Source: Intoshia linei | Lineage: Eukaryota; Animalia; Orthonectida | Length of the DNA stretch: 53,488 bases | Direction of reading: 5' to 3' | Assembly (NCBI GenBank): GCA_001642005.1 | Contig: LWCA01000109.1 | Location: 1-53,488, forward strand | Shown: piece by piece, positions 17,501 to 36,900 of the stretch | Layout of the letters: every line of letters starts with the position of its first letter | How positions within the stretch are numbered: the stretch's first letter is position 1 | Translations under genes and position numbers: made by a program | Notes under the pieces: model-generated | What the model saw: the letters and a program-made list of their open reading frames with translations, nothing else | Told to the model about the DNA's origin: nothing | Database searches by the model: none

Positions 17501-18313
17501 TTTAACTGAATGAATCATAAACAATTTGTGTGTCTTTTTCAATTCTGGTTTATGCGCGCACCGTTGAAAATACAACTTTACTAAATCGGCATCACCTTTT
17601 ATGGACAATTGGTGCAGTACACTCATATCCGTGGGCATATTGTCAACAATTATACTGTAAACATGTAATACTGCTTTAAGAGGAGCATTAGTCATTAAAT
17701 ATGTACAAATTTTGGTGGAAGTATCACTTTCTAGTGCTATATTAATTGCATTTTTATTATTCTTAAATTTCAATTGCGCCCATTTACCATTACTGCAAGC
17801 TGGTGATTGAGTTATTAAATCTATCAAATCATTGTAATATTTATCATCACAACAAAACATTTCAAATTCGGCAATTAATTTTAAATTACTGGACATGCGT
17901 CTAATAGATCTTGCTTGAGATACAGATTTAATAGCACCAAGGGAAATACTATTCTTGTCATTTTTGGCGTCTATTAAATGTAAATTTTCCGATTTTTCTT
18001 CTTCTTCTTCATCTTCTTCTTCTTCTTCATCTTCTTCTGCTTCTTCTTCTTCTTCTTCTTCCTCTTCATTCAAATTTAAATTTTCATATTGCTTTTTTCG
18101 TAATTCTTTTAACCCCTTTGATTCCTTTGAAGTACTATCACTTCTTTTTTCAACAGCAAAGTCAAATTGAGTTAAATCGAATTTAATTTTTTTAGTTGCT
18201 TCTTTCTAGAATCATTTATTAATTTTTAGATTAAAATTTCAAATTTAAAAAAAAACGTTTACTTGTTTTAATCGCTTTTCCAACTCTTTGTAATCCCCAT
18301 CAACTTGAGCCAT
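11597..18313 (-). CDS. TRPV-type cation channel with a long ankyrin-repeat N-terminus (exons 18313-18263, 18205-14696, 14657-14341, 12116-11597; about 1465 aa)
   Basis: Many TPLH/TALH ankyrin repeats, six hydrophobic segments, S4-S5 linker LKDIIVNDIARFFVVY and S6 end LLNLLIAMMNDSYSKV...W as in TRPV channels; splice phases are consistent. Confidence 0.88.
12170..12343. mobile_element. Short hAT MITE
   Basis: CAGGGTACACAACCT / AGGTTGTGGACCCTC termini; flanks GACAAGAT and GACTAGAT form an 8-bp TSD with one mismatch. Confidence 0.7.
13271..14318 (+). mobile_element. Near-complete Helitron-like element, following another copy ending at about 13260
   Basis: 5' TCTTTACTTATATAAAA..TGTGTG. 3' hairpin TGATTGTACGAAGTACATAACAATCA followed by GTTAG; the same TGTACGAAGTACATAACA core occurs at about 13236-13253. 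Confidence 0.55.
17995..18070 (-). repeat. (GAA/GAT)n coding microsatellite encoding a poly-Glu/Asp tract in the TRP channel N-terminus
   Basis: TCTTCT repeats on the + strand; translates EEEEEEEEAEEDEEEEEDEEEEE. Confidence 0.9.
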
Positions 18314-31209: not shown

Positions 31210-31325
31210 TTTACTAAAATTCAAAAAAATTTTAACTGTTTATTAAATATTTAATGTTCATAGATTTCAATTAAATTTTGATCAAAGTTTTTGTTGAGTT
31301 TTATAATTTTTTTATTAATTCACAG

Positions 31326-31473
31326 AGGGGTGCACGAACGCTACCCAACCATAACAAATTCTTTGCTCAACAAAGCTAATACAATGTTGCAGATGCCTTT
31401 AAAACTGTGTAATATGATAACGACATCTGGCCCGAGAGCTATATGATCATCTCGGATACTGCATTTGTAAATT
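31326..31473 (-). ncRNA. U1 snRNA variant A (5' arm AUUUAC-AAA); promoter interrupted by a MITE
   Basis: Reverse complement shows SL1 UCCGAGAU-GAUCAUAUAG-CUCUCGGG, SL2 loop AUUACAC (degenerate AUUGCAC), SL3, Sm-like AAUUUGUUAU and SL4 GGGUAGCG-UUCG-UGCACCCC. Confidence 0.8.
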
Positions 31474-31478
31474 AACTA

Positions 31479-31937
31479 CAGTCTAACTCGTCAATAATAA
31501 ATACCGTAAATAATGAACAAGTTTTTGTCAAAATTCATCCCTTTTATAGTAAATTTCTTATACATTCATTACTTATCGTGATTTTTTAATAATGAATCTG
31601 AAAAAAATAAAAATATTTATATGTTAACAGGGAGACCAAGGTCTGCAAAAATTTATTGACTAAATGGAATGTTAACAGTTTTGAAATACGTCACGTAATT
31701 ACTTTTTATTAGATATGGATTGTCAGTCTTTTTGGTTTATAAAAGACTGACAAGCCGTAATAAAAAGTAAGTTGTATCTACAAAAATGTTAGTGAAAATG
31801 AAAATAATTATTGAAATTTTTAGAGTTTTTAAAAAGGTATCCCTTTAATTCAAAATGTTGATTAAATCACCAAATTGTTTAATAATGAATGTGCCAAAAA
31901 TTCAACATTTAACGTTCATTATTGACGAGTCCGACTG
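31479..31937. mobile_element. Tc1/mariner/pogo-type MITE
   Basis: TA|CAGTCTAACTCGTCAATAAT ... ATTATTGACGAGTCCGACTG|TA, with an internal palindrome at about 31695-31772. Confidence 0.85.
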
Positions 31938-33056
31938 TAATATCGTTGACTTAAAAGGTTAAAATTTAGAAAAAATTAATTTTACACGCATAATATATTC
32001 AAATTTCATTTTTACTTGAATTTTACAATAACAGTCAAGTCGATTTAAAAAAATATTCAAATGAAACAATTAATATTTGTTAATACACATTATTTTATTA
32101 TCAAACTTTTTTAATTTGATTATTAACAGTTAATTTTACCTTTCATTTCTTTAAACAGGTAAATCGTTGAATTTTAATTACTTTGACAGTAATCTAATTC
32201 ACAGTTTTTCATTAATCAAAATACTACAGATAAATAAAAATCAATAATTTGTCAACAAAAGTTTACATTCAATTAACATAATCACAAATTGTTGAATATT
32301 AATTTTTCATTACTAAAATAAAGATACGTGTATTGGTACATTTTAAAAATTTATTAATACATAATAAATTATACATTTTTCTAGCAACTAATAAATTAAT
32401 ATTCTTATGTTCAATATAACTTTTAGTTCAAAGTTGAACATTTTTTAACACTCAATATCTAATAAATTTTACTTTGTATCAAATTTATTAAGTGTATAAA
32501 TGTAAGACAGAAGGAACAATGTTCATTGAATATTGTAATAGTGTTAAAATAATTTTAAATTTTTTTGTTTCGTTGATGAAATAATTTCCCAAGTTTGTTT
32601 CTTAAGTTTTGACATTCAAGATATTTTTGAAATTTATGATAATGTTCATGATTATAAAATCTTTATCAGAGTCAGAACCATATGACCCGGCATACAATCA
32701 TGAGGGTCCTAATATTTTAATTTATTAATATTTAATGTTGGAAAATTGCTTATGTATATTAAAATTATGATGACTAATTCGATTTGCAACTATTATTTTC
32801 AATTTTTAAACGATCGATTAAACGTCCCAATTTAAAACATTATTGATAAGGGCCTACTGCTGACTCTTTACAGTCCTGATCAGAGTATTTTTTTAAATTC
32901 TAAGACTCGTTTGAGTTTTAAAAAAAATGTAAAAAGCAAAGATATACAGAGATGTAAGTTTTTGAGATTGATATTTATCTTACTTTCCCCTAAAAAATCT
33001 GAATTCAACACAAACAAAGAGTTTTATTCAAGATAAGGTTCTAATTTAATTTTAAA

Positions 33057-33210
33057 TGAGGGTGCGCGAACGCTACCCCGAGTATAATAAATTTTCTGCT
33101 CAACAATGCCAAAGGCAAGGTTGCAAGTCAAAAAACAAGGCTATGTGCAATGCAATGTCTCAACTTGGCCCGAAGTCTCGTTGATCACTTCAGTGCTGCA
33201 AAAGTAAATT
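33057..33210 (-). ncRNA. U1 snRNA variant B (5' arm AUUUAC-UUU)
   Basis: SL1 CUGAAGU-GAUCAACGAG-ACUUCGG (U1-70K-type loop), SL2 with AUUGCAC (U1A site), SL3, Sm-like AAUUUAUUAU and SL4 GGGGUAGCG-UUCG-CGCACCCUC. Confidence 0.88.
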
Positions 33211-33270
33211 AAAAATAAAGATTGTAAAATGATTCTTATCAATTTTATTCAAAGGTAAACAAGAAAAGAT

Positions 33271-33284
33271 GCATAATTTATTCA
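33271..33284 (-). promoter_or_regulatory. Candidate snRNA proximal sequence element, TGAATA(A/T)ATTATGC
   Basis: The same 14-mer (one mismatch) occurs at 35212-35225 and 31988-32001, at an identical offset from the 5' arm in copies B and C. Confidence 0.65.
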
Positions 33285-33460
33285 CATGTTTAATTTTCAA
33301 ATTTTAGCAATCAATAATACATTTTAAAATACCATATATTATGTAAAAATAAATATATATATAATACTTAAGTTTAATTAATCATTTTAATAATAGTTGG
33401 ACTAATTTCTTTTACTAATAATAAATTTTAGTAAAATTTAAACTTTTAGAGAAATCTTTA

Positions 33461-33471
33461 TTACTTTGACA
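33461..33471 (-). promoter_or_regulatory. Candidate snRNA distal element, TGTCAAAGTAA
   Basis: Identical 11-mer at 35403-35413 and 32178-32188, always 190-191 nt upstream of the proximal motif. Confidence 0.6.
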
Positions 33472-33925
33472 ATTTTCACTTTTGTGTAAATAAAATGTTT
33501 ACTTAACGAAAAAGGATATGTTTTATTGACTACATATAAAATTATACAGTATTTTGATTTAAATTTTAAAATTTTAGTATTTATTTTAATTCAACTCAAT
33601 TTGAGAAGTATACACATGAAATATTGATACATATGTATTATACATTTTATAATCTTTTATAATAATTATTATCATGTAATTGAATATCGGTTTGATTACA
33701 TTTGCATCACTCGAAAATTTAACAGCATAATGTATCAATTTCAATGCCCAATTCTGATAATGCTTCGTCTTGATCTAAAACAAACAGTAAGGCTCATCAT
33801 TATGTGAATGCATTTTGCTAAATTTGGATCAAACTCTCATGGACTATACAAAATGAATGTTTACTATATTAAATTTCTCCATTCAGAAATTTTCATATTT
33901 AAATGATTTTTAAAATTAACACATA

Positions 33926-36900
33926 ATGAATTCTAGAAAATCTGATGATGATTACAATATTGGACAACGATACCCCGTCTATCGTGGTATGTCACCAACT
34001 AGTGAACATAGAATGGAGGTAAATCTGTATTCCATGCATCATTGTATATACAGTATCAGCGGCCACCAAACTATATAATAAAATTCGCGGCTAGATGGAT
34101 ATTGAATGCCCCATATACCATTTCAAAAAATTTGGTTTTCTATTCATTGTAAATATTATAGCGGTTGCATAATATAATTATGTTATAATAGTAGTTTTGT
34201 TCAGCGTTAAACTGCATGAGTAAAAAAATGTTGCCCACCATCTGAAATTTTTTGTAAAATCACTTTTTAATTTATAATAATATCTCCTTGATGATGGTCC
34301 TTTCCTTAGCTTAAAATAAGATAAATCGATGACATATAAGTCATACGATTAAAAGAACATAATTCTGATATGTATACATAAAGATTAATAATAGGAATAT
34401 AACTGCAACTATTATTTAAAAAAATTTCATATTTTAGTTTAATTTTATAGTTGTACTAATTGTTAAACTAAACTGTTAAACTATAATTTGTTAATAAGAT
34501 ATTATAATGTTTATCAATCAGGATCCATCTGTGTGTGACCTCACTGAGGACTTCTTCAATTGATAGATATTTAATTTTTATGAATTTTCGAATTATATCA
34601 TAGTGTAGTGCTCACTGCTGCATATAATTAGAAGGGATGTTTAGGCTTTTATCGTCTCGACAGTCACAAATTAATCATTTTAATTGCACGAAATATTTCT
34701 TTGTTCGTACTCATTTCTAACCTGTTGTGTTATAATCAAACTTATATTGATATATTATTTAGAAAAAAATGAACGAGTTGGAAGAAGTAGTCGAAATTGA
34801 AAGAGACGCTCGATTACGCGTAATATTCAATAGTCCATCAATACATTAAATATTAATATTAATTATAAATAATTATTATAATTAATCTTAATTATCAATT
34901 AAAATTATTATAATATATAAAATGGTATAACCAATACATTTTGATTACAAATTTAATGTAACCACGTTTTGTAAAAACTAAAATCTTTTATTCATTGATT
35001 AAGGGGTACGCGAACGGTACCCAACCATAACAAATTATTTGCTCAACAAAGCTAATGCAATGTTGCAGATGCCTTTAAAACAGTGTGCAATATAATAACG
35101 ACATCTGGCCCAAGACCTATATGATCATCTCGGATACTGCAGTCGTATATTAACTGTACAGTATTATCACTGACTTAAAAGTTTTAAATTTAGAAAAAAA
35201 TAATTTCGTACGCATAATATATTCAAATTTAATTTTTATGTGAATTTTACTATACCAATATTATAGATTTAACTAAATATCGAAAATTAAACAATGAATA
35301 TTTATTATGTACATTATTGTATTCATTAAATTTTTTAATTTATCTTAAAGTGTTAATTTTAGCTATTATTTCCTGTAAAAAGGTAAAAATTGTATATTTT
35401 AATTACTTTGACAGTAATCTTTTTCAGTTTTTGATTTTATCAAAATTTTGTATGTCATATTAATATTATCATAATATACATCATGTAATAATCAAAAATG
35501 TAAAAATCAATATTATTTAATACAGTCAAAGTTTAACAGTCAAACATTAACGGAAATTTCCATTTTAACGGAATTTTGAATTATTTTTTTTCTTAACCAA
35601 TGTGTATGAACCAAAAATTTGATCTCTAATGCTTTAGAATCTATTTTTAATCACTATCATAAATATAATTTCATTTTTTTACTAATTAAAAGTAAATTTA
35701 TTGTTTTTTATCAAATTTTTAATAGATATTAAACAAGATTATGTTAATTAAAAATAATTTTAAATTTATTTTATTTCAGTATATAATTTAAAATTGATAA
35801 AATTTTTCATGAACTCAAAAATACTTCTGTCAACCCCAGGAACCATATGGACCAGTTGATAATATTTTGTGTATATTACTTCGTCATACATTATTCAAAA
35901 AATCATAATAACAATAAATATGACCATTTAATGGTTTTTACATAAAAAAATTAAATTCCGTTAATAAGTATGTTACTACATGAATCATTACTACTGTATG
36001 AGGAAAATTCACTATTAACAGAATTACCGAATTTGCATCCCGTAATTACGACTTTGACAGTACAATGTATAATGTTATACACTAGTTACCACGAAAATTT
36101 TTGACCTGCGGGTCGGATAAACTAAAACAAATATACGTCAAATATATGCCAAATAGAAATACAAACATATGTGGCGTATTTAAAATTATAAATAAAAAAT
36201 TGATAAATTGATAGCTCTCACCAAAAAGTTGAAAGCGTCCATATTTTTTTACTTTCTTGTGCACCAATTTCTTCGACCATCATAAATTACTAAACACCCA
36301 AATTGCAAACCCGGTTCTAACATTTCAAACAATAATAAGTATTTTTTGTATAGTTAGAATTTTTAATAAACCAAATTATTTGACACAAAACTCTATTACA
36401 GAAGTTCCCACTTTTTTTTTACAGTGGACCTGTAATAAATTATATTTTAAATTATATTAAATTATATATTTATAAATATGTAATCATGTACATTTAATGT
36501 ATAATGTATGAGTTAAATGTAGCTTAAATTAAATCCTTATTGATTACTAATACGATAAATAACATTTAGATGGAAAAGGAATATAGTGATCTATCCATTA
36601 AATTTGAATCAACATTGGATCAATTACAAGAATTGGAAGATTTACAATCTGGACAGGTTCTAAACTTAAATATGCGTAGTAGATATATGGTTCACAATGT
36701 GAACTTCACATTGATTGATGTACCAAATTGATGATTCTTTAAATTTTCGAGCTCATTTGATTTTTAAAAAAAAAGGCGTCGGGTTTTTGACCCTAAAAAA
36801 CCCAATTTTGGGAAATAAAACATAGATATAACATCACCTGCAAAAAATTGTATTATAAATTGGGCTTGTTTAAAATTTAAAGAGGTGGGGAAGCATTTAC

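Follow-up and report, generated by a model that had tools for sequence, protein, structure and literature searches.

Three members of a strongly diverged U1 snRNA gene family in the orthonectid Intoshia linei and the fit of their 5' arms to a degenerate donor landscape

In this study, we examined three U1-like small nuclear RNA (snRNA) genes, named A, B and C, that lie on the minus strand of a 53,488-nucleotide (nt) stretch of the Intoshia linei genome (GenBank assembly GCA_001642005.1, contig LWCA01000109.1, positions 1 to 53,488), referred to below as the window. Judged from sequence and predicted structure, the window carries three members of a strongly diverged U1 snRNA family of twelve genes. 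The explanation that we consider best, and hold with reasonable though far from complete confidence, is that B is a working variant U1, C an intact member of a multi-copy type and A a pseudogene. The 5' arm of U1, i.e. nt 3-11, which face the donor (5' splice site), is among the most invariant of animal RNA sequences, and the question addressed here is how donors are found in lineages whose splice signals have eroded.

The three genes and their family

A covariance search with the Rfam U1 model (RF00003; gathering score 69.5 bits) was run at relaxed thresholds on the 5.5-kb stretch that holds the three units, as an earlier note on this DNA had proposed, and it matched all of them. Each unit aligned end to end (model positions 1-166) on the minus strand. 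The match to B (33056-33212) scored 58.4 bits with E 5e-13, that to C (35002-35148) 36.3 bits with E 1e-6, and that to A (31325-31474) 25.1 bits with E 2e-3. The three full-length minus-strand U1-like genes of the earlier note are therefore confirmed. An identity as U11 or another snRNA was considered and rejected: RF00003 was the sole match and the loops specific to U1 are present. The genes and their arms are placed as follows (R1 is our own family model, described below).

33056-33212, minus strand: U1 variant B, type III; 152.8 bits with R1; folds
33201-33209, minus strand: arm of B, AUUUACUUU
35002-35153, minus strand: U1 variant C, type IV; 145.8 bits with R1; folds
35142-35150, minus strand: arm of C, AUAUACGAC
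31325-31475, minus strand: U1 variant A, type IV, likely no longer functional
31464-31472, minus strand: arm of A, AUUUACAAA

The anatomy claimed for the units was found in every part. Stem-loop 1 (SL1) carries a 10-nt loop of the U1-70K-binding type (GAUCA..AG), which reads GAUCAACGAG in B and GAUCAUAUAG in the other two; the SL2 loop, i.e. the U1A site, reads AUUGCAC except in A, where it is AUUACAC; a Sm-like site (AAUUUAUUA in B, AAUUUGUUAUGG in A and C) stands between SL3 and SL4; and the terminal SL4 of each unit carries a UUCG loop. B is intact throughout its four stem-loops and helix H, and so are its AUUGCAC loop and its Sm-like site. The genome also encodes the N-terminal domain of U1-70K. 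The arms read as previously described, and none of the three genes carries the canonical arm ACUUACCUG, the complement of CAG/GUAAGU (the slash marks the exon-intron boundary).

Compared with canonical metazoan U1 (RF00003), the units likewise have a four-stem-loop cloverleaf with helix H, the GAUCA..AG and AUUGCAC loops, the Sm site and the UUCG loop, a length of about 150-160 nt, an upstream proximal sequence element (PSE) and a 3' box-like motif. They differ from it in that they score under the gathering cut-off, that of the arm only U6-A7-C8 and A3 are kept, and that the UAC core is one base off relative to the PSE and helix H.

The genome assembly (41.6 Mb, 3520 contigs, 26 % GC, the same GC content as the window, which is its contig C2162) was searched with RF00003 and with R1, a covariance model built from seven copies of the family. 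R1 returned twelve strong matches, with scores of 124-179 bits, the next match reaching 21 bits. With RF00003, four genes elsewhere in the genome stood above threshold, and five further copies were matched over their full length at 30-51 bits. The twelve genes were classified into five types.

Type I: L080, arm ACUUACCUG, every loop canonical
Type I: L081 (positions 1501-1669, i.e. G000 C2786:17033-17201), arm AAUUACCUA, 4.7 kb from L080
Type II: L078 and L079 (positions 1501-1670 of each, i.e. G000 C504:4510-4679 and C1710:31963-32132), arm ACUUACCUG, SL1 loop GGACAAGAGG
Type III: B, the sole gene of its type in the genome
Type IV: C and A, with the arms given above, and L082, L085, L087 and L089, with the type IV consensus arm AUUUACGAC
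Type V: L088, arm AUUUACGAU

L078 and L079 are a near-identical pair in which GGACAAGAGG replaces the GAUCA..AG loop. The canonical-arm genes are L080, L078 and L079, against nine genes with a variant arm, and L080 is the only one in which both the arm and the U1-70K loop are canonical. At nt 9, all four bases (C, U, G and A) occur across the family. The arms of A and C lie 2 nt and 1 nt, respectively, from the type IV consensus; being small departures from an arm shared by a six-copy type, they are not the separate arm designs for which the earlier note took them, and they differ from one another at three of nine positions, not at four. The case for a diversification of the arm between A and C (3/9 vs 11/140, p = 0.04) is weak, as it amounts to one plus two private changes from one family arm.

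The preservation of stems despite diverged sequence, also claimed previously, was upheld by the pattern of compensatory changes. All twelve genes were aligned under the guidance of the model, and controls were obtained by sliding the pairing partners by 1-3 columns and by 500 shuffles. Standard pairs filled 91.4 % of the cells, vs 34-48 % in the slid controls, and double (i.e. compensatory) changes were recorded in 18 of the 34 pairs, vs 3-6 in the slid controls; none of the 500 shuffles reached the observed values. Relative to types I and II, A, B and C have swaps in common, for example one from AU to UA in helix H and one from AU to GC in SL4, and additional swaps distinguish B, type IV and type V. 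Such compensatory swaps between types imply that each lineage has long evolved under the U1 fold. The private changes of C also keep pairing: two in SL1 yield U-G and G-U pairs, and two in SL4 swap a G-C for an A-U pair, with the bulge shifted. Minimum free energy folds gave a cloverleaf for A, B and C; the corresponding z-scores against shuffles were weak in every U1 gene, the canonical ones included, and do not discriminate. When each stem-loop was folded by itself, B, C, L082 and L088 came out intact, and A, L085, L087 and L089 showed loop mutations or weakened stems.

Constraint is also suggested within the arm, where the placement of changes says more than the fit to donors described below. 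Across the variants of the family, changes fall only at U1 nt 4, 5, 9, 10 and 11, and nt 3, 6, 7 and 8, which face the most strongly conserved donor positions (+6, +3, +2 and +1), are unchanged in all seven arm variants. For the approximately 11 arm changes inferred, confinement to five of nine positions has a probability of (5/9)^11 = 0.0016 under random placement.

Among type IV genes, bodies are 89-95 % identical and flanks 36-85 %. L087 and L082 (C3240:53217-53383 and C1887:44028-44194) are recent segmental duplicates that show the reverse, with flanks 97-98 % and U1 bodies 93 % identical; this divergence of the bodies suggests that one copy has either decayed quickly or undergone gene conversion by a different type IV gene.

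Promoter signals, the probable loss of A and neighbouring loci

A PSE-like element of the form A[TA]A[TA]ATTATG ends 60-62 nt upstream of the arm in 11 of the 12 U1 genes. Outside the U1 family, this element was cross-checked on U6, where the same motif (ATAAATTATG) ends 64 nt before +1 and is followed by a TATA box at about -28; a PSE plus a TATA box upstream of U6 is the classic layout of the snRNA proximal sequence element. The signals found around the three genes are listed below.

33272-33281, minus strand: PSE-like element of B, ATAAATTATG, ending 62 nt before the arm
35213-35222, minus strand: PSE-like element of C, ATATATTATG, ending 62 nt before the arm
31989-31998, minus strand: displaced PSE-like element that once served A, ATATATTATG, in sequence that aligns to that upstream of C and L085
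33460-33471, minus strand: distal motif of B, TGTCAAAGTAAT, at about -259
35402-35413, minus strand: distal motif of C, TGTCAAAGTAAT, at -260
32177-32188, minus strand: displaced distal motif of A, TGTCAAAGTAAT, at -713
33039-33047, minus strand: 3' box-like motif of B, AAATTAGAA, downstream of the gene
34984-34992, minus strand: 3' box-like motif of C, AATAAAAGA, downstream of the gene

The distal motif recurs in L085 and L087 at -245 to -259, and the flanks of B and of the type IV genes are unrelated apart from the upstream motifs that they share. Beyond SL4, AAWNNWAGA-like motifs lie at 11-12 nt in most copies, this being a weak motif in AT-rich DNA. Signals of RNA polymerase II snRNA genes, i.e. 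a PSE at a fixed distance and a 3' box-like motif, are therefore found in B and C, and not in A. As regards U6 itself, two genes (L090, positions 1501-1605, and L091; C2452:15849-15953 and 17689-17793) lie 1.8 kb apart.

The upstream region of A is interrupted by a transposon of 463 bp (31477-31939) with 25-nt terminal inverted repeats (TACAGTCTAACTCGTCAATAATAAA and its complement) that are 88 % complementary. The insertion site is separated by 2 nt from UUAAUUUAC of A, on its upstream side, and the PSE of A is shifted by 463 bp. On the far side of the element lies sequence that can be aligned to that upstream of C and L085 and in which the PSE and the distal motif of A are found; the position of the latter corresponds to about -250 plus the 463-bp insertion. 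The element has at least 54 matches over many contigs, many of them ending exactly at element position 1 or 463, and a raised depth in DNA contigs. It is non-autonomous, and its interior holds a 32-nt hairpin (31701-31772) with a weak mir-2238-like Rfam match.

Further damage to A comprises the U1A loop AUUACAC, a 2-nt deletion in SL2 and an SL4 loop closed by G-U; past SL4, no AGA 3' box was found. Because its promoter is cut off by the element, its U1A loop mutated, its SL2 shortened, its SL4 loop closed by G-U and its 3' box missing, A is best read as a pseudogene, which would have been lost when the transposon inserted between promoter and coding region. The same observations speak against the view of A as a gene for a specialised small nuclear ribonucleoprotein (snRNP), put forward in the earlier note. 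A is like U1 pseudogenes in its separated promoter, its mutated protein-binding loop and its lost 3' box, and L087 and L089 are similar; B and C differ from such pseudogenes in that they retain promoter elements together with all structural and binding motifs.

Around the U1 genes, one further locus is a small, highly expressed gene on the plus strand, represented by a spliced contig of the apparently RNA-derived run X2. Since this contig matches the window perfectly, X2 must be RNA of the same or a very close organism.

33895-36591, plus strand: start of the highly expressed gene; spliced X2 contig, depth 898
about 33895-34018, plus strand: exon 1, donor GAG/GTAAAT
34763-34819, plus strand: exon 2, donor CGC/GTAATA
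from 36570, plus strand: exon 3

C sits antisense within intron 2 (34820-36569) of this gene, whose first (744 nt) and second (1750 nt) introns are both long for the genome. A high-copy repeat occupies 32590-32860, with a summed depth of about 960 vs about 10 nearby in a DNA run and many loose ends at 32627, 32715 and 32747. The window also holds an open reading frame of 1129 amino acids (aa) with ankyrin repeats, the best database relative of which is an Intoshia linei protein that is 40 % identical, i.e. a paralogue.

The donor landscape and its fit to the variant arms

Donors were inferred from kinase genes of the genome by homology, not from transcripts. Exon-wise matches to Pkinase (PF00069) were re-aligned with a local hidden Markov model, for which kinase domains free of introns were taken from this same assembly; between adjacent exon matches, every frame-open GT/GC..AG intron was scored, and the best was kept if it stood at least 4 bits over any alternative donor. 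The choice of donor was thus blind to positions -3..-1 and +3..+6. PRPF8 was tried as another source of introns and rejected, its PROCN domain lying within one open frame of 1872 aa (L007, C1208:8296-9513), which points to few introns in a very conserved gene.

In all, 91 GT introns were collected; their median length was 41 nt, in agreement with the short introns reported for Intoshia linei (PMC6543705). Their consensus is AAG/GTAATT, with the following composition.

Donor -3: A 47 %
Donor -2: A 51 %
Donor -1: G 58 %
Donor +3: A 77 %, T 22 %
Donor +4: A 59 %, T 30 %
Donor +5: T 48 %, A 29 %, G 15 %, C 8 %
Donor +6: T 58 %

The commonest hexamers were GTAATT (13 of the 91), GTAAAT (11), GTAATA (8) and GTATTT (7), and GTAAGT was found twice; the two donors of the window supported by X2 (see above) match the census. 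The degenerate donors asserted in the earlier note are thus real, as a G at +5 in 15 % of donors and GTAAGT in 2/91 attest. The individual donor strings that it listed do occur where it placed them, some of them on the minus strand; they are frequent by chance at 26 % GC (TTTGTAATT occurs 13 times) and do not count as evidence. U6 keeps its canonical ACAGAGA box, although a G at donor +5 is rare.

The fit of each arm was measured as the number of contiguous Watson-Crick or G-U pairs around the GU, for the 91 donors and for 2135 decoy GTs within 250 nt. The proportions with at least 6 pairs were as follows.

Canonical arm: donors 21 %, decoys 5 %
L081 arm: donors 33 %, decoys 8 %
B arm: donors 42 %, decoys 16 %
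Type IV consensus arm: donors 22 %, decoys 13 %
A arm: donors 19 %, decoys 11 %
C arm: donors 5 %, decoys 8 %

That an altered arm may suit degenerate donors is borne out for B, which reaches twice the proportion of donors reached by the canonical arm. Its enrichment over decoys is 2.6-fold at 6 or more pairs and 4.2-fold at 7 or more (26 % of donors vs 6 % of decoys). For A, the advantage of donors over decoys is marginal. When nt 3-6 were ranked among the 256 possible tetramers, AAUU (L081) came first, AUUU (B, A and type IV) second, the canonical ACUU eighth and the AUAU of C twelfth; nt 3-6 of L081 are exactly complementary to GTAATT, the most frequent donor. Among the 64 triplets at nt 9-11, the UUU of B ranked second and the canonical CUG third, GAC 53rd and the AAA of A 55th.

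On these grounds it is plausible that B is a U1 re-tuned to AT-rich donors, and that L081 has an altered arm matching the degenerate donors of the genome. As a working variant, B would pair through its arm with AAR/GUAARU donors, with G-U wobble where needed, and since it could do so, it would initiate 5' splice-site recognition on many donors that the canonical arm pairs poorly. In C, the half of the arm that faces the intron would suit GUAAAU, and the half that faces the exon would be unsuited to typical exons.

A stronger proposal, made in the earlier note, is that A, B and C are each a specialised U1 snRNP for a donor class of its own, defined at -3..-1 and +3..+6. The arms do differ and the donor landscape is degenerate; moreover, 19 of the 91 donors reach at least 6 pairs with the canonical arm by itself and 53 once the arms of L081, B and type IV are counted as well, and the presence of C, U, G and A at nt 9 could jointly allow any base at -1 to be paired. 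Against this, A is without a usable promoter, A and C depart only slightly from a shared family arm, their exonic triplets pair fully with 2/91 and 1/91 donors, respectively, and the arm of C is not enriched on real donors. The co-variation of donors with the arms that the earlier note predicted was sought as an association between a pyrimidine at -1 and a purine at +5, as expected from the GAC arms, and none was found among the 91 donors (Fisher p = 0.62). Three specialised snRNPs, each with its own exon-intron class, are therefore not supported, and we hold this proposal to be unlikely. What survives of the repertoire once suggested is that U1-family arms other than the canonical one exist and that B fits the donors; what does not is the part given to A, which is disrupted, and to C, which has no donor preference, and canonical-arm genes exist beside them.

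The poor fit of GAC to ordinary exons leaves room for another view of types IV and V, namely that they are expressed U1-like RNAs with a different role, either on one AUUUACGAY target or in a regulatory, telescripting-like function. The well-diverged types IV and V do have AUUUACGA(C/U) in common despite this poor fit. However, no candidate target was found, GTCGTAAAT being absent from the window. We regard such a role as very improbable.

Working variants or silent duplicates, and comparable systems

The reading of B as a working variant has to be weighed against one in which all non-canonical copies, A, B and C included, are silent duplicates decaying AT-ward, and L080, L078 and L079 make all working U1. 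Several observations weigh against our reading, and most of them speak for silence. A default-threshold Rfam scan of the window returned no match, A, B and C all scoring under 69.5 bits. No run catalogued as RNA holds the stretch, and no X2 contig lies over A, B or C; since X2 consists of assembled contigs, probably of poly(A)-selected RNA, their absence is uninformative. Decay is visible in some type IV copies: A is split by a transposon and mutated in its U1A loop, and in L087 and L089 loops carry mutations and stems are weakened. In the duplicates L082 and L087, the bodies are less alike than the flanks, and where bodies are more alike than flanks, gene conversion could be the cause instead of selection. 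Both GAC and AAA are a poor fit to the donors, and the arm of C performs no better on donors than on decoys. The shifts toward A/T at nt 4, 9 and 11 (C-to-U and others) are also expected from AT-biased decay, and any change at nt 4 improves the fit, the top three ranks of 256 being taken up by the single mutants possible there. As every change at nt 4 helps and U-rich arms gain by wobble, fit alone cannot separate re-tuning from AT-biased decay. Finally, the donor census covers a single protein family, assumes GT/GC..AG introns and is homology-based. In human, variant U1 genes are mostly barely expressed and few support splicing (PMC10870369).

Silent decay, for its part, does not readily account for the exact spacing of the PSE, nor for a distal motif that lies equally far from B and from C, two genes with unrelated flanks. 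It also has to face the many compensatory changes between types III, IV and V, the private changes of C that retain pairing, and the UAC core and nt 3, which are untouched in seven arm variants (p = 0.0016 if changes were random). Moreover, it would leave L080 as the only gene canonical in both arm and U1-70K loop. We consequently judge silence of all non-canonical copies rather improbable, and keep to the reading in which B works, C is intact and A is dead.

A broader proposal, which we put forward tentatively and with more doubt than belief, is that an animal whose donors lack G at +5 reads them by means of several coexisting, co-evolved U1 snRNAs. Donors would then be split among U1 paralogues instead of being served by one invariant arm, with ACUUAC for GUAAGU, AAUUAC for GUAAUU and AUUUAC for GUAARU, and B would be the AUUUAC member, with a wobble-tolerant UUU in the half that faces the exon.

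No paper on orthonectid U1 was found in the literature searched. The closest analogue at the level of the family is provided by human variant U1 genes (PMC3561869, PMC10870369, PMC13172311), which are likewise a multigene mix of canonical genes, transcribable variants with arm or loop changes, and pseudogenes. Expression of the human variants at their own loci is below 0.001 % of that of canonical U1 (PMC10870369). The two families differ in that a canonical array dominates in human, whereas variant arms are here in a majority of 9 vs 3, and in that divergence among the types described here is much greater, with compensatory changes in their stems and donors that have moved off the canonical arm.

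The closest cases of co-evolution between U1 and donors are Entamoeba, Mastigamoeba and Physarum (bioRxiv 10.1101/2022.06.08.495308), where the U1 recognition sequence is altered to complement atypical donors, as proposed here; for Physarum, both standard and modified U1 variants have been reported (same source). These organisms are protists whose donors follow a single, strict and atypical motif, and Entamoeba has a single U1 gene. Intoshia linei, in contrast, is an animal with loose AT-rich donors and several arms, in which nt 4 and 9-11 are changed, and not nt 5-6.

For the biology of this animal, the central point is that its donor consensus AAG/GTAATT mismatches the canonical arm at +5, and that intact, promoter-bearing U1 paralogues are altered at positions facing variable donor bases. 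Were these paralogues silent, they would form a family of pseudogenes of unusual age and preservation, and it would have to be explained how three canonical-arm genes serve such donors. If B and its relatives are expressed, they would provide a natural animal example of co-evolution between an snRNA and its donors, with several arms in each cell.

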